The notes: generated by a model from the letters alone, not told the origin. DNA of 64,000 nt from Epithemia pelagica (GCA_946965045.2 OX337242.1:744001-808000), one strand, 5' to 3'. Counted from the stretch's first letter, positions 23,085 to 33,314 are shown. Numbers and translations are program-made.

Positions 23085-23264
23085 ACCAGTCCGTTTCGAA
23101 CATCCAAACAATGGTTTCCAATCATCATTCGATTATTCGCTTTGTCATGGCCTTGACAATGATTGGCGTAGAGAACCAGTCCGTTTCGAACATCCAAACA
23201 ATGGTTTCCAATCATCATTCGATTATTCGCTTTGTCACGGCCTTGACAATGATTGGCGTAGAGA
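23085..23264 (+). repeat. 90-bp (30-codon) tandem duplication over the start of the chimeric ORF
   Basis: 23085-23174 and 23175-23264, with one mismatch seen (ATGG/ACGG). Confidence 0.9.
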
Positions 23265-24373
23265 ATCGTTGTGCCTATGTGCAGGCTTTCTCCTGTCCTC
23301 TCACTAGAAGAAAGACTTTCGGGTTTCCATCGAACAGCCAAGTCCATTTGGTAAATATGGCCATGTCATCGAAATCACTCTCTCCTGAGTCAATCACTAC
23401 AAGGGAAAACCCTTCAGTTGGATCGCAAGTTTCTACGGGATCAACCTGCCCTTTCACCCAAGTGGAAGCCAAGTGGCAAGAATACTGGAGGGGGATGAAA
23501 GGACATAATATCTTGCATCCCATTGTTATTGCTTGGGATGCATTTCGTTTAGCAGTGGAACAACTTGCTGTTCAAACGAGTGCTCGATCGTTCCAAAATC
23601 CTGCCCAAAACAAGTTCAAGGACAAGTCAATGACGCCACCCATGGCCACTGTCTCCATGTGGGAGACCATTCAATCCATCGCGGGTTCCGACGCACCGTT
23701 TTTCCTACTTCGAACAGCACGACAACTAGGTCCGTCCACAAAGATATTTCGTATTCCCATTCCTATCCAGGGTGGTGTCTATGTTATTTCGACCGACAGA
23801 CAGTGTGCTAAAGAAATCATGCATTTCATTGCTGGAGGATATGAAACCACAGGATATACCTTAGCAACGACCTTGGTGTTATTGGCCAAACACCCCGAGG
23901 TAGCCGACAAGGTTTACCAAGAGCAGGCAAAAGTAGGCCGCACTCAAATATCGGAGTATCTCGCATGTGTCATCAAGGAAAGTCGTCGCTTCCTTCCCCC
24001 TGCCGCTTTATTTTCCAGCCGACAATACAGAGAAAGCGTCCAGTTGGGATCCTATAAAGTGCCTGCTGGTGCCATTTTGCTTCTTCCGCAAATGCTACCA
24101 CATCGGGACGAACGGGTCTTTGGACCTGACCCGGATGCCTTTCGACCGGAAAGATGGCTGGGTGAACCTTCGAAAGAAATGGACGACTCCCTCTTGACCT
24201 TTGCTGCTGGTACACGCAATTGCGTGGGACAGGCTTTGGCCATGGCGGAACTTGAGTCCGTTTTGCCTCGGCTTCTTTCAACCTACAGGTTTACGATTGA
24301 GGAAGAAGGGAATCTCGACTTCTTTGTGTCACTCAAGTTCAGCGGGACGCGGCTGCGTGCTGAACGATTGTAA
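23111..24373 (+). pseudogene. Chimeric LeuRS(5')::P450(3') open reading frame, 420 aa; pseudogene or young chimeric gene
   Basis: N-half matches LeuRS at 30519 (CAYVQAFSCPLTRRKTF, PFTQVEAKWQEYW, MKGHNILHPI, AWDAFRLAVEQLAVQTSA). C-half matches the P450 at 8438 (PPMATVSMWETI...APFFLLR, then FIAGGYET through FAAGTRNCVG...AERL). Confidence 0.85.
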
Positions 24374-24611
24374 TGATGATTAACTCTCAAATATATGGGT
24401 GTGCGCTGCCTAGTAACAACTGCTTGAATGTCTAAAACCACTAAGAGAATCGTTCGAATGTCACTACGTTGACTTATTCTACGGTGCAATTCAAACTAAC
24501 ACTTGATGCTTTCCGTTCGGAAGCTTGGCTCCATTAGAAAAGAAACTATAATAAACGGAATAACAATTGGTCATCCAGATTAGTCATCATATAGATCCAA
24601 CAACTTGATAT

Positions 24612-27600
24612 TTAGTTCTCCTTTGAGGTGTCCATAGGAGAAAAAGCTTTCTCCAACACATTGGCGAACGGAGGGAGCACTAACTTCTTTTTCGCTGCGG
24701 CACTGGCCGATCGCGTAATACGTTTTGTCGGTTGGTTGGCGTTGCCAGCGTGCTCTTGCTTATTAACCGAGTGTGAAGGCTTCGGAGACAAAGGCGTGCG
24801 AGAATGTGAGCCTTGTCTCGACAGCTTCGGTTTTGTTTCTGTTTCTCCCGATGTATTAGAGATGGAATTTCCCGAAGAACTAGGTGATCGCGAAGCACGT
24901 GATTCCCTCACGGATCCGGGTAGATCAATCGGGAACACTGGTTTCGGTGAAACACCTCTCCGTGATCTGGATGCACGTGTCGCACGAGTCGATGTTGTTC
25001 GCTTGTTGCTCTTGGGAACTGGGGAGCGTGGTGGTAATGATGGAACTTCATCAACTGGCGATTTTCTGTCCAATGAAGATGAAGCAATCTTCTTTCTAGG
25101 TCTTGAGCTGTTATCGGGTGCTGGAGAGGCCCTTTTCGTTCTCGTGTGACGATTCATTGACGAAAGAGGGGAAATTTTTGCACGTATTCTTTTCTGTTCG
25201 CTAAGGACGTCATCAGCTTTTGCTGAGACCATGCGAGAGGAAGTACGTGCGGCTTCCTCTGTGGGCGAAACCTTTGAGCGTTTGCGTGCGGTCAGGTCTT
25301 CGTTGCTAGGTGAAACCTTCGAGCGTTTTGGTCGGATATTGCTGAACGGATCCGATTCTTCGCTACCAGTGCTACTGCTGGAATCGTATCGCCGCTTTTT
25401 CCTATCCGTTTTCACCGTTCGCAGGTGCATAAACTCCTTTCTTTGTTCAATCCATGAACTCATTTGATCCGAGTTTTCGAGGAGCAACCGAACGTCATCG
25501 CTTAGTAGACTAGCATCGAAAATAGCACCTTCTTGATCATACCAAGATTTCAACAAACCAGCCAGTTGTTCCATTTTGAAAGAAAACTTTGCTTTCATAT
25601 GCTTACGATACCTCTCTTCTTTCAACAGATGAGAACTTCCCGTTTGTCGACTTAGCAACCTGTTTTTGTTGCATTTCCTGTTTTCGAAATCGGCCAACTG
25701 AGCGTTGAGGACGCGGACTTCAGAATCTAGTGACAATATGTTGCTCTTAGTTCCCTGTTTGGTCCGTAGTTTCTCGACTTCTTTGTGAACAGCATCTAGC
25801 TTCAATAGTTTTGATTCCAAAAGCGAAGACTTTGTTTTGGCATCTTTCGCAGATTTCAAAACCCACGTCTCACCGTGCAAAGATGCATTATCGACAATCT
25901 TGTCAAAGTCTTCAGTACTCTTTGCATTCGCCTCCCTTTGCAAGTTTTCCATCCGCTCCCAGAAAATGCCTCTGTCGGAGCTCGAAATGCCCAGGGCCTC
26001 CCAGACAACTGCTAATGCCTCGACTTCACTAATAGCCATGGCTTCAACACAACCGGACAATGCTTCCACCTCAGAAATGAACGTGCTGATCCTCTCCCTG
26101 GATATTTCAGGAAGCCGGAACAATGCCTCGTGAAAAGAGGAGTAGGCTTCTACGGTTTCAGACTCACCATCAACGGCTTCAAGTAACTTTTTCTGAGCAT
26201 GCTCTACAAGACGTGTCAATGCGACCGAAAGATCGCGGCGACATGACAGAGTTTGCTGCAACGCTGTGTGAATAAATGATATGTGTTGCGTGTATGCTTC
26301 AGTTGCTTGCACCGCCGAGCTGTCAGATGATAATGAATTTGTGATGTCCGTAGCAAGTTCTTCGTTCCACCAGGATGGAGAGGAGTTCATCTTGCGTTTC
26401 ACAAGGCTCGAGACTTGGTTTGCCTTGAGTCCAGCGCTCTTTACCATGCCCTTCGTAGCTTCGTACCGTTGGCTATTGGTCACAAGGATCTCACTTTTCC
26501 TCAACCTCAATGCCGACAGATGTTCTTCGCACTTATCCAAATGCGACTGGCTGACAGTTACAATATCGCTTTGTGAGGATCTGATCAGCTCTTCAAAACA
26601 CTGGTCTACGTCCTGCAAGCCTAATCCAAGATCTTCCATGACTTTTTCCAACGCCCGCTTTATCGAAGCTCTTTGATCCAACGCGTCATTGTATTGTGTT
26701 CTGAGATCAGTTTCCACTGCTTTCATTTTGGAGAGTTGATCAACTAAGCCTCCCTCTGAGGAAACCTCAACACTCGCCAATCCCAACTGCATCGTGAGTA
26801 ATTCCACCGATTCTATGCTCGCCTTGAGCTCCTCGGAGATTTTCGCGCTCTCTGTTTTAGCCTCTTGGAGATTCCTTTGAATAGTGTCTCGGACGCTGTT
26901 TCTGATCGAGTCGATTAAGTTTTCATTCGATTCATCCCGGCCCAATCCTCGGAGAAGCGTCTGAAGCTCATCCAGAATCGGCTCTGCTACGCTGATTTGC
27001 TCCTGGATGGAGGCTGTCGCCTCGAACAACGACAGCTTCTCTTTTGCTTCAACGCTTTCAGTCATATAGTGATTTTTCTGTTGAGATAACTCATCTATGG
27101 ATGCTTGAAGTCGCGTTAATTCCACAGAGTTTGGGGATTCCTGGTCCTGAGGAGATGGTACTTTTACGATTTGGTTGCTCAACACGTCAATTTCTTTCTC
27201 GAGACTCTCGACAGTCTTAACCTTTTGTTTGAGTGAATCTGCATGTTCGCGGCTTTGAAGCTAAGGGGATCACGAACACGTTAGCTCCGGTTATGCGAGC
27301 ATAAAATGTCATTCGGAACTACTTTTCAACTTACCTCGGACGACGCATATAATTCAAGCACCTCGTGCATGACGCTTCGTAGTACAGGTGCATCTTTGCT
27401 TTCGATCCATCCTCTCATTTTAGTTTCTTGTTCGTCTCCGTCGTCTACCATCTGGCGTTCCAATTCTTTCAAACTGTTTCCAAGAATTTCAGCTTTTAGC
27501 TCCATGTCCAAAATGTTTTGCTGTAGGTCTTCTTCGACTGGACCGTTGTCTTTCGTCGACTGACGGAGCTTCTCGACCGCTTCAGCCATCGATCGCATTG

Positions 27601-30060
27601 TCGATGAATACTCAGCAATTTGTTTTTGGTACAAATTCTGGAGACATGCTTTTTCAACTCTATCATTTATTGAGTTTCGCAGAAATCCAATGGCGTCTTC
27701 TACTTCCTCAGTTGATCGAGCGTAAAAGGATTCTTCTGTGAGCTGAGGAACTGGCATCGTCATGGTTAGTCGTCGACGACCGCCAGTTCGTTGCAAATCA
27801 CGTTTTCTCACTGACAAAAGCTTTGACAAGTGGCTCTTTGTCTCTTCTAGTTTTCCGGTCAGCTTCTCGATATAGATCTGTCTTTTCTCCAAATTTTTCT
27901 TCTGCATCTCTACTTCATTTTCAAGCTTTGACATTTTGTGCGTCGTCTTGCGCTCCTTCTTTTTTAGAGCAGTAATTTCACGTTGCTTCGCCTCAGTATA
28001 CTCCCGGTGTCGCTGTCCAGCTTCTTTTTGCTTTTTTATCATCGCCGCACGGTCGGCTTTGAGGTCGGCGATTTTTCGCTCGAGATCATGGCATTTCTCG
28101 ACTTCCTTATCGAGCAAACGGCATTTCCTTCGATGGTCTTGAACCTCGATGCGTAGTCTCGACAATGATCTATCGACATTCTCCATGTTCCGCCGAATAG
28201 TTTTCGAACATCCCTGTGATGGGTCTTTCGTGACTTTTCCCAGCTTGACAGACAACTCCGACTTTTCTGTCTCTAACTGGCGTACTTGAGCCATCGACAT
28301 CTCGTATTTGTCTTTCAATTCTTGGTAAACCTTCATACTATCTCGGAGCTTCATCAAAAGTGCCTGCTCCTTCTCAAGTATACCATCGACCTCTTTGATC
28401 TTTTCGTGGTCTTCTTTTTGTGTCTCTGTGAAATCTTGGTCGCGTTGTTGCAATTCGAGTAGATGATTCAGGATTTGCATATCGTCATCAGGATTCACAT
28501 CTTCAAAAGAGCTTCCATAGTTTCCTGATGACTTTTTATGTCCATCATTACTATTGATTTCGAATTGTATGTCCGACTGGCCGGTTGGCGGTGTCAGTGC
28601 AAGGGCACTATCGTTCGGTTCAGGCAGAAAGGGTACAACGGCCGACAACGTTTTTGTTGATTGCGCTACGTGGTTCAACTTTGATAGATATTCTCTGACA
28701 TCCTCTCGCTGAAGGAGGTCATCTTCCATGGGCTTATTGGCTCCTCCCGTTGACTCTGGTATAAACTTCAGTCGAAGAAGCTCCGACTGAAGAACGCTAC
28801 TCCAAGAACGAAGTTTCTGTAACTCCAATATCGTCGAATCAACATTTTGTACGGGGGCATTTTTGATATTCCGTGCTCGGTTTGCATATCGGAGGGTACT
28901 CAATGTTTCACTTGCATTGGTTGTCGACGGGGAGACACATGCTAGGAACAGAGTCTGGGAATTGCCACCTAAAGCATCTTGCAGCAATCTTGTGAGTTTC
29001 GATTGACGATAAGGTACGTGTGGTTTTTTCCCCTCTCGTTCTTCATCAGCGAGAGCGTTGATGACGTTTCCAAGCGCTAAGAGGCCTTCATTGATTTTGA
29101 TCCCCTCCCGAGCGCGCTCTCCTTCTGCCCCAGTCTTTTTCATACGCTCACTTCCAGCAAGGTCGACAAAGGTGAAACGGCTGGTAGCACACACTTCTAC
29201 TCCATCACCACCGATTGTTGTTTGATTCAACGTCACAGCAAAGACTGCGTGTGATCTACTACTTGTAAGGTTCATGAGAGTAGCAGCTGTGGTGCGGTTA
29301 AGGGTTCCTTCATGCAGGACTTGAAGGGCAGCCTGAGCTGTCCTCACGGGTTTCTGCGACAGACCACTACAGACAACTCCTCCGTTGGCATCTTCCCGAA
29401 TAGGAACAGATGGTCGTGAAGGATCGAGTAAATCATGAACGTCTTCGCCATAGACTTCGAGAAACGAAGCTTCAATGCTGTAGTCAATCAGAGCGTTCGT
29501 TGTAGCTGCAGCTGAAGAAGGAATGTCCCCACCATCTTGAGAAGATGATGCTTCGGCCGCTTGCTTACAGCTTCCTGCCTCTTGCCGGCGTCGTAATGAA
29601 TCGAACAAATCATTCATAAAGCGAGGAATCAAACCTGTATTCTCTGACACGCGAATATCGGCATGGGCTTCGCTCCCCATGGTGAATGTCTTGCCAGAAC
29701 CTGTTTGACCATACGCCATAATCTTAAAATTCGAAGAACCAGCTGTGAGGGTACACCGAAACTCATGAAAAGACTTTCCAACATAGAACGTACCGTAGCA
29801 TTGTAGCCGTCGATGAAGCTCTCGAGTAAAGGAGGAGCAACGGACCGATAAAGTTCGTCTTGCTGAGTCCTTTCGTCAAACACGGTATCGTACGTGAACC
29901 GTCGTTCTGTTCCCAACCGAATCTCTCGATTACCGTGACACGATAAGGCAGGTTTGCTTATTCCGCCGTCTTGAACAATTTCCTTGGATGTCAAGGGACG
30001 GACACGAACTCCAACCCGTACGACGGAGCGATTTCGTGGAGACGGTGGTCGGTGTGACAT
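24612..30060 (-). CDS. Kinesin-4 motor fused to a PRC1/MAP65/Ase1-like microtubule-crosslinking domain (3 exons, about 1767 aa)
   Basis: Exons 30060-29794, 29722-27335 and 27260-24612. Introns are 71 nt (ACG|GTACG...TTAAG|ATT) and 74 nt (GAG|GTAAG...GCTAAC...CTTAG|CTT), both phase 0 and in frame. Motor motifs: VRVRP, AYGQTGSGKT, SSRSH, DLAGSER, HVPYRQSKLTRLLQDALGGN. MAP65-like motif: NKNRLLSRQTGSSHLLKEERYRK...LLKSWYDQEGAIF. Confidence 0.8.
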
Positions 30061-30518
30061 GACAAAAGGGGAATAGAATCTCCTCCTTCTGAGATGAAAA
30101 TCTGGTTTCTATGACGAAATGTGCACAGATAATTGCAGTCAATCAGACTTTGGCTTCGATGGTGAAATCGTTTGTCGAGACCTGCTTTGTTCAGGCGTAT
30201 TTTGTAACGCACTCTATGCTCAACTTGTGTTTTGTGTGGGCTTCTCTGGCCTCTGCATCTTTATCTTTCTCTTCCCCAGAAATGTGTCCATATATGGGTC
30301 GGCGGGCGTTTGAGCGCGCATCGATGTCTGCAATAGGTTATGGGACTCTGACGTTTTCCTCAAACGTGGGCTCCAGGTGGAATCAAACCACCAAGTTTGC
30401 TTCCAATTTCCAACACATCATCATTCATCCCTCAATCAGATTCTCGAGACGACGACGAAAGATCCAGATGATCGGACTGCCGCAATAGGCGAGGTTAAAG
30501 GACTACAGATAAATTGAC

Positions 30519-33314
30519 ATGGTGTCTATTCATCATTCTGCCGTTCGCTTGTCTGTTTCGTTATCGTTCCTATCAAGGTTCCTACCTAGGTTCTTTATCA
30601 TGACCTCGACGATGATTGGCTTGGCGAATCACTGTGCGTATGTGCGGGCCTTCTCATCTCCTCTCACGAGAAGGAAGACCTTCGCGTTTCCACTGAGCAA
30701 CCACGTCCATTGGTCAAAGATGGCCTTGTCATCGAAAACGGACGCCACTGAATCAGCTACTGCGACGGAAAGCCCTGCGGCCACATCGGAAGTTTTTCCC
30801 GGAACGTATCCATTCACCCAGGTGGAAGCCAAATGGCAAAAATACTGGAAGGACAACGCCACATTTCGAACTCCCGATCGAAGTTCGTATAATGAAGAAA
30901 ACAGCAAGCCCAAAAAGTATGTACTAGACATGTTTCCGTATCCATCTGGTGCTGGCTTGCATGTCGGTCACCCCGAAGGTTACACTGCCAGTGATGTAAT
31001 GGCTCGATATTGGCGAATGAAAGGATTTGATGTCTTGCACCCAATTGGTTGGGATTCTTTTGGTTTACCAGCGGAACAATTTGCGATTCAAACTGGTGCT
31101 CAACCAGCCGAAACTACTGCGCAAAACATTGCAAATTTCAAACGACAATTGCAAATGTTGGGATTCTCCTATGATTGGGATCGCGAAATTGCCACTACAG
31201 ACATTGAATACGTCAAGTGGACGCAGTGGATCTTCCTCCAACTCTTCAAGAAAGGATTAGCTTCACAGTCCAAGGTATCGGTCAACTGGTGTCCGGCGTT
31301 AGGAACTGTTTTGGCCAATGAAGAAGTCATTGATGGTCTCTCGGAACGCGGAAGTCACCCCGTGGAACGGGTACCCCTACGACAATGGGTATTGAAGATT
31401 ACCCAGTATGCTGACAGCTTGTTGAGTGGATTAGAGGGGTTGGATTGGCCCGCGGGAACGCTAACAGCTCAAAAGCAATGGATCGGCAGATCGGTGGGAA
31501 GCCGGATTGAATTTGACATTGAGAACAATGGCGAAGACAAAATCACTGTATTTACAACACGACCTGACACCTTGCTTGGTGTCACGTACGTGACTCTAGC
31601 ACCAGAACATCCATTGGTCAAGCAGGTGACGACCAATGAACAACGAGAAGAAGTGGACGCATATGTCGAGTTGACGCAACGTCGATCAGACTTGGATCGT
31701 ACGTCAGCCAAAGAAAAGACAGGTGTATTCACAGGGGGATATGCGATTCATCCCCTTGACTCAAGTATTCGCGTACCGATTTGGGTGGCCGATTACGTCT
31801 TGGGATCGTACGGCACCGGTGCTGTCATGGCGGTCCCAGCGCATGATACACGCGATTTTGAATTTGCCCAAACTTTTGGGCTGCCGATCAAATGGGTTGT
31901 GGGCCCACCAGACTCTTCCGAGACAACATCAGACGACACAGAAGAAACAGCCTTTACAGATCCTGGTGTTCTCATCAATTCTGGTGAATTTGATGGCCTT
32001 TCCACTGAGGATGCCAAAACCGCCATTACGGAAAAACTAGAGGAACTGAAGAAAGGAGGTGCTGAGATCACTTACAAACTTCGTGATTGGGTGTTTTCGC
32101 GCCAACGCTATTGGGGTGAACCCATTCCAATTTACTTCCCTGTTGACTTTCCCGAGGGTGTTGATCCATCCACACAAGACCCACGTGAAGATGGTTGTGA
32201 ACATAGCATTCGATATGACGACCCCATCCCCGTCAAAGAAGAAGATTTGCCTTTGGCGTTGCCAGTAATGGAAGATTTTCAACCTGGGGATGATCCAGCA
32301 GGATGTTTGGCTCGAGCTAAGGAGTGGAGGTACTTTTTCGAGGACAACCAGTGGTTTGCACGCGAAACGAATACCATGCCGCAATGGGCGGGAAGCTGCT
32401 GGTATTACTTTCGATTCGCCGATTCAAAAAATGACAAAGAAGCATTTAGCAAAGAAGCAGATTCTAGTTGGATGCCCGTAGACTTGTATGTGGGAGGATC
32501 GGAACATGCCGTGTTGCATTTGCTTTATGCCCGATTTTGGCATCAAGTGTTGTATGATTTGGGATACACAACCCACCCTGAACCTTTCCAGAAACTGGTC
32601 CACCAAGGAATGATTCTGGGAAGCGATGGCGAGAAGATGTCTAAAAGTCGAGGGAACGTAGTCAATCCTGATGATATTGTACAAGAGCAAGGTGCGGATG
32701 CACTGCGAATGTATGAAATGTTCATGGGTCCATTGGAAGCAGTTAAGCCTTGGCAAACCAGTCAAGTGGCTGGAGTGGTTCGATTCATGCAAAGAGTGTA
32801 CACTGTCGTTTCCGCTGCTGTGGTCAACCAGAAGAAGGACATGGATGATGAAACTCTTCGGTTAATGCACAAAACAATGAAGAAAGTGACAGAGGACATT
32901 GAAAGCATGTCGTTCAACACGGCTATTTCCGCACTTATGGTATTCACCAATCACTTGCAGTCCCTGAAAGAAGAGGTTCCAATGGAAGCTGTCAAAAACC
33001 TTGCTTTGATGGTATCGCCGTTTGGACCTCATTTAGGCGAAGAATGTTGGAGTTTATTGGGAAACGAGATGTCTCTGGCGTATGAGCCATGGGTAGAATA
33101 CGATGAAGCTCTTTGTGTAGACGAAAGCATTACGATGGGTGTTCAAGTTAACGGAAAGGCTCGGGGAGAAATCACAATCCCCGCAGACGCAGATCAAGAA
33201 ACTGCGATTGCAGCGGCGCAAGAGGTGGAGAAGATCGCCAAGCTTATTGATGGAAAGGACATAAAAAAGATCATCTATGTTCCAGGACGGATTTTAAATA
33301 TCATAGCCAAGTAG
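30519..33314 (+). CDS. leuS: Leucyl-tRNA synthetase, organellar (bacterial type)
   Basis: MFPYPSGAGLHVGH (HIGH), CP1 editing region TTRPDTLLG...GTGAVMAVPAHD, DWVFSRQRYWG and KMSKS. N-terminal presequence with VRA-F, an ASAFAP-like cleavage site. Confidence 0.97.
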   Translation: MVSIHHSAVRLSVSLSFLSRFLPRFFIMTSTMIGLANHCAYVRAFSSPLTRRKTFAFPLSNHVHWSKMALSSKTDATESATATESPAATSEVFPGTYPFTQVEAKWQKYWKDNATFRTPDRSSYNEENSKPKKYVLDMFPYPSGAGLHVGHPEGYTASDVMARYWRMKGFDVLHPIGWDSFGLPAEQFAIQTGAQPAETTAQNIANFKRQLQMLGFSYDWDREIATTDIEYVKWTQWIFLQLFKKGLASQSKVSVNWCPALGTVLANEEVIDGLSERGSHPVERVPLRQWVLKITQYADSLLSGLEGLDWPAGTLTAQKQWIGRSVGSRIEFDIENNGEDKITVFTTRPDTLLGVTYVTLAPEHPLVKQVTTNEQREEVDAYVELTQRRSDLDRTSAKEKTGVFTGGYAIHPLDSSIRVPIWVADYVLGSYGTGAVMAVPAHDTRDFEFAQTFGLPIKWVVGPPDSSETTSDDTEETAFTDPGVLINSGEFDGLSTEDAKTAITEKLEELKKGGAEITYKLRDWVFSRQRYWGEPIPIYFPVDFPEGVDPSTQDPREDGCEHSIRYDDPIPVKEEDLPLALPVMEDFQPGDDPAGCLARAKEWRYFFEDNQWFARETNTMPQWAGSCWYYFRFADSKNDKEAFSKEADSSWMPVDLYVGGSEHAVLHLLYARFWHQVLYDLGYTTHPEPFQKLVHQGMILGSDGEKMSKSRGNVVNPDDIVQEQGADALRMYEMFMGPLEAVKPWQTSQVAGVVRFMQRVYTVVSAAVVNQKKDMDDETLRLMHKTMKKVTEDIESMSFNTAISALMVFTNHLQSLKEEVPMEAVKNLALMVSPFGPHLGEECWSLLGNEMSLAYEPWVEYDEALCVDESITMGVQVNGKARGEITIPADADQETAIAAAQEVEKIAKLIDGKDIKKIIYVPGRILNIIAK

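Follow-up and report, generated by a model that had tools for sequence, protein, structure and literature searches.

Can a motor protein and the crosslinker that it binds be encoded as one polypeptide? This question is raised by a locus on the minus strand of a 64,000-nt stretch of the Epithemia pelagica genome (GCA_946965045.2 OX337242.1:744001-808000; this whole stretch is called the window below), in which kinesin-like reading frames are directly followed by a MAP65-like one. In animals, PRC1/MAP65 dimers crosslink antiparallel microtubules, and KIF4A together with PRC1 constitutes the minimal module that sets the length of antiparallel overlaps in reconstituted midzones. Our analysis indicates that the locus is very probably a single three-exon gene encoding a 1767-aa protein, in which a kinesin-4 is covalently joined to a PRC1/MAP65/Ase1 crosslinker with a basic tail and which would act at midzone overlaps. 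Our confidence is high for the gene model and for the identity of both domains, and moderate for the midzone mechanism, which we infer. The preliminary description of this DNA had proposed a Rosetta-stone pair, and the locus corresponds to this picture: the two components are separate, interacting proteins in animals (PMC10620760) and are encoded by one mRNA and one open reading frame (ORF) here and in relatives.

At the level of the unspliced DNA, the locus consists of three successive minus-strand frames. The frame 30060-29629 encodes the N-terminus of the kinesin motor, 29719-27326 (797 aa) encodes the remaining motor and the stalk, and 27185-24612 (857 aa) lacks an ATG of its own and begins with a GTG in the ORF listing. 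The kinesin frame terminates in TCC GAG|GTAAGT TGA, and the perfect GAG|GTAAG donor described earlier was confirmed on the minus strand, with the last exon base at 27335 and the donor G at 27334. Downstream, intron 2 carries a GCTAAC branch-like box followed by the acceptor CCCCTTAG, which ends at 27261. Exon 3 opens at 27260 straight after the acceptor TAG, and 25 in-frame codons precede the GTG of the 857-aa ORF. Thus, the sequence itself and the spliced contig described below both agree with the earlier proposal of a 74-nt intron with GCTAAC and CTTAG that joins the kinesin in frame to the ATG-less ORF. The residues flanking this kinesin/MAP65 joint are ...YASSE-LQSR.... Intron 1 cuts the motor domain between positions 78 and 79 of the Pfam Kinesin profile; its removal restores ...GYNATIMAYGQTGSGKT... 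and rebuilds the P-loop context ...GYNATIMAYGQTGSGKTFTMG... across the splice site. The spliced coding sequence comprises 5304 nt, has no internal stops and encodes a protein of 198 kDa.

Four sequencing runs from one organism and one study hold this stretch, and their contigs were aligned over positions 24450-30250. Run X5 yielded a single 6874-nt contig across 24450-30226 in which two segments and no others are skipped, 27260/27335 (74 nt) and 29722/29794 (71 nt), both of which read CT..AC on the plus strand, i.e. GT..AG on the gene strand. The same stretch is unspliced in the genome-type runs X2 and X4 (~120 Mb of contigs each). X5 comprises 39 Mb of contigs and is of unrecorded run type; we infer that it is cDNA and that its contig provides evidence of a spliced mRNA. 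A transcript that crosses 27335/27260 instead of ending after 27326 had been predicted, and this assembled contig is spliced exactly there. The same contig also extends 1242 nt past 24450, on the 3′ side of the gene, into a convergent ORF (23111-24373), which reflects either a long 3′ untranslated region overlapping this ORF or the merging of two convergent transcripts by the assembler.

The N-terminal half of the encoded protein is predicted from its sequence to be a kinesin-4 with a complete, active-looking motor and a KIF21A-type stalk. The motor matches Pfam Kinesin (PF00225) with an E-value of 7.6e-87, and its motifs are all intact, including the P-loop GQTGSGKT (aa 94), switch I SSRSH (aa 243) and switch II DLAGSE (aa 276). 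Pfam scans detected the stalk domain KIF21A_4th also in the diatom and Nannochloropsis orthologues and did not find it in the oomycete orthologues. Among PDB sequences searched with phmmer, the motor scores highest with mouse KIF4 (3ZFC/3ZFD, 229 bits), followed by a kinesin-like protein (7x4n, 225 bits) and KIF7, with OSM-3, KIF3B and Eg5 (kinesin-2 and kinesin-5) lower. The uninterrupted motor of the 64%-identical Epithemia orthologue gives the same order (KIF4, 300 bits; KIF7, 253-268 bits; best named non-kinesin-4, 252 bits). The placement in kinesin-4 is a ranking of scores among PDB sequences and not a phylogeny. Orthologues are labelled “kinesin family member 4/21/27” by two independent sources. 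Together, the Pfam Kinesin match, the KIF21A_4th stalk and the order KIF4, then KIF7, among solved relatives agree with the kinesin-4 identity given in the preliminary description. The kinesin part ends with the stalk (aa 885), and the binding partner seems to stand in for the C-terminal tail that KIF4 proteins usually have, a reading made with no search aimed at tail motifs.

The C-terminal half is predicted by structural modeling to be a PRC1/MAP65 homologue, despite a Pfam miss in the window's own copy that is weighed below. Residues 85-640 of exon 3 were modeled with AlphaFold2 on a 15-sequence alignment, with a mean predicted local distance difference test (pLDDT) score of 80.3. When this model was compared with the PDB using Foldseek, ranks 1-4 were all human PRC1 (4L6Y, 4L3I) with E-values of 1.8e-6 to 3.2e-5 and a probability of 1.0, and the next match had an E-value of 0.02. 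VIA-align aligned the model with human PRC1 at a Z-score of 12.6 over 417 of 432 residues in a collinear manner, such that model positions 1-528 correspond to PRC1 8-444; the identity in this structural alignment is 12-13%. Furthermore, isolated spectrin-like domains match model positions 410-526, namely the microtubule-bound 5KMG_P (Z 9.1, root-mean-square deviation 5.0, 106 residues) and 3NRX (Z 8.2).

Sequence relatives of this half point in the same direction. Orthologues of the C-terminal part were recovered with E-values of 1e-73 to 1e-173. A family of 15 members, i.e. 14 orthologues and the window's own copy, was compared with Pfam MAP65_ASE1 (PF03999): eleven match at E<=0.1 (best 2.3e-10, 40.2 bits), the own copy and three others do not, and the gathering score of 26.9 bits is exceeded by four (40.2, 29.7, 27.4 and 27.0 bits). 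E-values of 1e-86 to 1e-173 support the orthology of the own copy to the matching proteins. Full-length fused relatives score 36-40 bits against the same profile. In a protein-language-model comparison, MAP65_ASE1 families account for all 30 nearest Atlas clusters; the top score is 0.90, and 189 of 256 features are in common. The MAP65/Ase1 signature quoted in the preliminary description, FENRKCNKNRLLSRQTGSSHLLKEERYRK, is present and lies within the most conserved block of the family. Between the kinesin stalk and the PRC1/MAP65 module, the protein has a linker coil of ~85 aa.

A search for the same architecture in diatoms and other stramenopiles had been suggested, and full-length fusions are found in pennate and centric diatoms, eustigmatophytes and oomycetes. 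In the diatom contigs L001, L003-5 and L006 (36-50% identity), the MAP65 ORF is immediately preceded on its own strand by a kinesin with both Kinesin and KIF21A_4th, 55-135 nt away. At the homologous codon, after ..SE, the sequence allows a canonical phase-0 GT..AG intron of 77 nt in L001, of 69 or 75 nt in L003 and of 69 nt in L006. Moreover, L002, a JGI transcript-type contig, holds the stalk and MAP65 in one unbroken 1162-aa ORF without intron 2. At another position of L002 (~1800-1812, matching aa ~598 of the window protein, within the kinesin stalk), the frame changes once; this may be an assembly indel, a real frameshift or a retained segment, and it leaves the kinesin-MAP65 joint unaffected.

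Full-length relatives were sought with the longer L002 protein as query, so that long candidates were allowed. Among the diatoms, they comprise proteins of Epithemia clementina (ACA910_009677, 1801 aa), Seminavis robusta (“Kinesin-like protein”, 1710 aa), Fistulifera solaris (“kinesin family member 4/21/27”, 1624 aa), Nitzschia sp. Nitz4 (NITZ4_000694, 1703 aa), a metagenome-assembled genome (MAG) of the Bacillariaceae (SGILL_001299, 1589 aa) and the centric Chaetoceros debilis (A0A7S3Q1D9 from an MMETSP transcriptome, 1988 aa). Several of the full-length diatom relatives carry Kinesin, KIF21A_4th and MAP65_ASE1 in one chain according to Pfam. The closest relative, ACA910_009677, aligns with aa 10-1767 of the window protein in a single high-scoring segment pair across the joint with 63.6% identity.

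An exhaustive search with a hidden Markov model profile of the MAP65 part returned 241 proteins at E<=1e-3, and the best matches after the diatom family are again long proteins, which match at their C-terminal end. Fusions outside the diatoms include those of Nannochloropsis salina and N. gaditana (TFJ88142.1 and EWM29216.1 (W7U8S6), 2095 aa), with Kinesin, KIF21A_4th and MAP65, and of the oomycete Achlya hypogyna (OQR93907.1, 1483 aa), with Kinesin and MAP65. In Pythium oligandrum (TMW65173.1, 1574 aa) and Lagenidium giganteum (DAZ96700.1, 1676 aa), a Kinesin domain is combined with a C-terminus that matches the diatom MAP65 profile. The oomycete fusions are 26-42% identical in the two conserved ends. 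A word search starting from the Nannochloropsis MAP65 region returned eustigmatophyte relatives and one further fusion only.

Based on this distribution, the fusion architecture predates the divergence of ochrophytes and oomycetes, and a single origin would be the economical reading. The preliminary description had tied the fusion to the diatom central spindle. Its occurrence in diatoms was borne out, but it is not a diatom speciality: since eustigmatophytes and oomycetes have the fusion too, the diatom central spindle alone cannot explain it.

Among the shorter matches, we also considered candidates for stand-alone MAP65 genes. All four “MAP65-only” models with enough flank (L009, L010, L011 and L012) have a same-strand kinesin directly upstream and are read as split gene models, which is no proof that a separate MAP65 is absent from these genomes. 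Because public annotations and ORF callers split the orthologous locus, domain-architecture counts from databases under-report the fusion. This is also a lesson for annotation, as several assemblies split the locus and Pfam misses the MAP65 half in some copies, including that of the window.

Several observations weigh against a kinesin-4/PRC1 fusion and have to be set against this evidence. The window's own exon-3 product (882 aa) has no Pfam MAP65_ASE1 match at E<=1 in hmmscan, and the Pfam scan of this 882-aa C-terminal part returned only a sub-threshold match to RNase_J_C. A phmmer search of the C-terminal part against the PDB gave MIS12 and coiled-coil noise only, without PRC1, and an hmmsearch with the family profile reaches PRC1 in the PDB at an E-value of 0.044 only, among GCN4 and myosin coiled coils, so that this match is not usable alone. 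In addition, the transcript is documented by a single assembled contig, the run type of which is not recorded, and minor isoforms as well as transcript ends are invisible in contigs. Finally, the joining of a parallel kinesin coiled coil to an antiparallel PRC1-type dimerizer poses a topological puzzle. Given the missing Pfam match, the noise in the PDB sequence searches and the fact that middling Z-scores are common for helical models, the C-terminal half could be read as a generic long helical or coiled-coil tail with a basic end and a superficial likeness to PRC1. We consider this very improbable: four orthologues lie above the Pfam gathering score, PRC1 occupies Foldseek ranks 1-4 with E-values four orders of magnitude better than that of the next match, the alignment with PRC1 is collinear nearly throughout (417/432 residues) with the spectrin domains of 5KMG and 3NRX matching the right sub-region, and the atlas neighbours are MAP65 clusters without exception (30/30). 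The preliminary description had counted a missing MAP65_ASE1 match as evidence against the fusion. Whereas the Kinesin part of this Pfam comparison was positive, the MAP65_ASE1 part was negative for the own copy, which formally contradicts the fusion, and positive for 11 of the 15 family members. We regard this negative as outweighed by four independent lines, as language-model neighbours, orthologue matches to PF03999, Foldseek and VIA-align all bear out the PRC1/MAP65 identity.

The locus might instead comprise two separate genes, a kinesin-4 and a MAP65, the joint being a minor read-through transcript and the main products being a kinesin that stops at the intron-2 TGA and a MAP65 translated from an internal start. 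Retention of intron 2 would indeed stop the kinesin two codons past the donor, several annotation pipelines give two models for the locus, and minor isoforms could hide behind contigs. However, an ATG is missing at and around the start of exon 3, whose frame opens at the acceptor, the sole transcript contig is spliced, and a phase-0 intron is found at the same codon in four lineages that are 36-50% identical. Moreover, transcript-derived ORFs of other species cross the joint without an intron, and the adjacency is kept from diatoms to oomycetes, which unlinked genes would not do. A pair of genes is thus quite improbable, and a minor kinesin-only product generated by intron-2 retention may exist beside the fusion protein. 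Since the run type of X5 is not on record, its intron-less contig could also represent DNA instead of mRNA, from a processed retro-copy or through an artefact of assembly. This we find barely credible, and the least probable of the three alternatives: both introns are removed precisely at GT..AG, the 39 Mb of contigs contrast with ~120 Mb in each genome-type run of that study, and the gene model is independent of X5, since proteins of other species, both transcriptome-derived and annotated, reproduce it. The features of the preferred reading, a single fusion gene, are compiled in the table together with the split loci of other assemblies.

Table. Features of the Epithemia pelagica fusion gene (window positions) and orthologous loci that are split in other assemblies.
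Feature	Position	Strand	Basis
Whole coding region, 1767 codons + stop	24612..30060	-	Stop-free spliced coding sequence; one X5 contig spans the whole with both introns out
Exon 1, aa 1-89; start codon and first part of motor	29794..30060	-	Pfam Kinesin profile 1-78; X5 contig extends 166 nt upstream of ATG
Intron 1, 71 nt, GTACGT..AG, phase 0	29723..29793	-	Skipped in X5 contig
Exon 2, aa 90-885; remaining motor, neck and coiled-coil stalk	27335..29722	-	Pfam Kinesin profile 79-327
Intron 2, 74 nt, GTAAGT..GCTAAC..TTAG, phase 0; kinesin/MAP65 joint	27261..27334	-	Skipped in X5 contig
Exon 3, aa 886-1767 + stop; linker coil, PRC1/MAP65 module, basic tail	24612..27260	-	Reading frame
Kinesin motor domain, aa 19-375, intron 1 inside	28865..30006	-	Pfam; intact motifs
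Kinesin-4-type stalk, aa 513-679, Pfam KIF21A_4th	27953..28453	-	PF25764, E 1.1e-10, 41.9 bits vs cut-off 33.1
Predicted PRC1/MAP65-like module, aa 970-1497; dimerization hairpin, rod and spectrin-like domain in order	25425..27008	-	AlphaFold2, Foldseek, VIA-align; orthologues match PF03999
Predicted spectrin-like microtubule-binding domain, aa 1379-1495, with motif ...NRLLSRQTGSSHLLKEERYRK...	25431..25781	-	VIA-align; densest block of invariant columns
Disordered basic Ser/Pro/Arg/Lys-rich tail, aa 1501-1767 (267 aa)	24615..25415	-	Isoelectric point 11.4; 58 K+R, 53 S, 11 SP/TP sites
C-terminal short motif LPPFANVLEKAFSPMDTSKEN, LP(P)FGxVL..[ST]P..KEN	24615..24677	-	Family conservation
Split locus, Bacillariaceae MAG GCA_046255035.1	L009 4989-10172		Separate 'kinesin' and 'MAP65' models
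Split locus, Pythium insidiosum GCA_001029375.2	L010 5993-10954		Separate 'kinesin' and 'MAP65' models
Split loci, two further assemblies	L011 5712-11043; L012 6128-12207		Separate 'kinesin' and 'MAP65' models

The basic S/R-rich tail noted earlier was also recovered, and the pLDDT drops below 50 at its start. The order of a spectrin domain followed by a basic tail is the usual layout of MAP65/PRC1 proteins. The tail contains no full [ST]Px[KR] site in any of its 267 residues. The LP(P)FGxVL motif at its very end recurs in the last 60 aa of 101 family proteins, and in 61 of these a KEN follows within ~20 residues; P864, F865 and L869 of the motif are invariant. The motif was not seen in the oomycete proteins examined and is weak (KEN/QEN) in eustigmatophytes. 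Speculatively, it might be a KEN degron for the anaphase-promoting complex/cyclosome or a docking site.

How might such a protein act? In the animal complex, the extreme C-terminus of Kif4A (aa 1133-1232) binds through hydrophobic motifs to aa 1-168 of PRC1, its dimerization and rod region, and the loss of this contact disturbs the central spindle and cytokinesis (PMC10620760). In the fusion, the C-terminus of a kinesin-4 stalk is linked to the N-terminus of a PRC1 module, i.e. the same two ends that meet in the non-covalent Kif4A-PRC1 complex are joined, and as a Rosetta stone it validates the end-to-end topology of this complex. The fusion protein would dimerize, and its MAP65 arms would select and bundle antiparallel overlaps, while its own plus-end-directed heads would bring it to the plus ends in the overlap and act on them there. 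Overlap length and sliding, whether resisted or driven, could then be controlled at a fixed 1:1 ratio of motor to crosslinker. Because phosphorylation can no longer switch the association of motor and crosslinker as it does in animals, cell-cycle control would need to be exerted on the tail, with its 11 SP/TP sites and possibly a KEN degron, or to protein abundance. Moreover, the combination of a parallel kinesin coiled coil with an antiparallel dimerizer could give rise to higher-order bipolar assemblies.

Compared with the animal KIF4A-PRC1 pair (Xklp1-PRC1 in Xenopus, Klp3A-Feo in Drosophila), the fusion has both protein families, the meeting ends and the order of dimerizer, rod, spectrin domain and basic tail in common. 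However, the animal proteins associate with micromolar affinity and under the control of phosphorylation, whereas the fusion is covalent, constitutive and 1:1. With the stand-alone MAP65/Ase1/PRC1 crosslinkers of plants, fungi and animals (PF03999), it shares a fold that is collinear with PRC1 8-444, the spectrin block and a basic Ser/Pro-rich tail. Unlike them, it is very divergent in sequence, to the extent that the own copy falls below the Pfam threshold, and carries ~970 aa of kinesin and linker at its N-terminus as well as a clade-specific C-terminal LPFGxVL..KEN motif. Centralspindlin, composed of the kinesin-6 MKLP1 and CYK4, and the bipolar tetramers of kinesin-5 likewise combine a motor and antiparallel bundling in one stable midzone particle. 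These belong to other families and are non-covalent oligomers, and any mechanistic likeness to the fusion would be presumptive only.

A more far-reaching reading is that stramenopiles use the fusion as their main or even sole PRC1-type crosslinker and KIF4-type motor, a bipolar particle that combines bundling with sliding or braking and represents the long-sought machine of the diatom overlap zone. It could even be the 205-kD spindle-associated phosphoprotein of Stephanopyxis, whose phosphorylation, going by the title of a 1987 paper by Wordeman and Cande, reportedly correlates with spindle elongation in vitro. We regard this extended reading as unlikely. The orthologues of centric diatoms have masses of 204-222 kDa, a match to the 205-kD protein that we treat as a coincidence and only as a lead.

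The preliminary description knew of no published account of such a fusion, and our full-text literature searches likewise found no paper describing a kinesin-4/PRC1 fusion. A broad survey of kinesins (Wickstead 2010) makes no mention of MAP65, PRC1 or Ase1, and a 2025 preprint on Phytophthora microtubules states about MAP65 only that it is conserved in oomycetes. The sequences themselves are already in public databases as gene models: orthologous fusions are deposited in GenBank and UniProt under generic names, none of which is annotated or discussed as a kinesin-PRC1 fusion. As far as we found, this is therefore an unremarked architecture and not a new sequence; the families are textbook ones with a well-studied partnership, from which the fusion differs by its covalent, constitutive form.

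The fusion represents a natural experiment in which motor and crosslinker have been welded together since before the split of diatoms, eustigmatophytes and oomycetes, with their stoichiometry fixed and the association switch gone. Diatom central spindles are a classical in-vitro system for anaphase B, and the gene provides a clonable candidate for the crossbridging motor material of their overlap zone, the molecular components of which were never completely worked out. Likewise, it may be a component of the antiparallel overlaps that position nuclei in Phytophthora hyphae.

Regarding the genomic neighbourhood, the loci of L003-5 and L009 have common neighbours of the fusion gene, namely a PP2C phosphatase, a TLD-domain protein and a phytochelatin synthase, and the neighbours in the window differ (leucyl-tRNA synthetase, LeuRS, and a P450-like ORF). 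In the window, the fusion gene is flanked by the plus-strand ORFs 23111-24373 and 30519-33314, both of which begin with a near-identical leader of ~120 aa (MVS.HHS..R.. / CAYV.AFS.PLTRRKTF.FP... / PFTQVEAKWQ.YW). The 3′ neighbour is a full leucyl-tRNA synthetase, and the other flanking ORF runs on into a P450-like C-terminus. The leaders, which lie ~7.4 kb apart, look like a duplicated 5′ end of the LeuRS gene.

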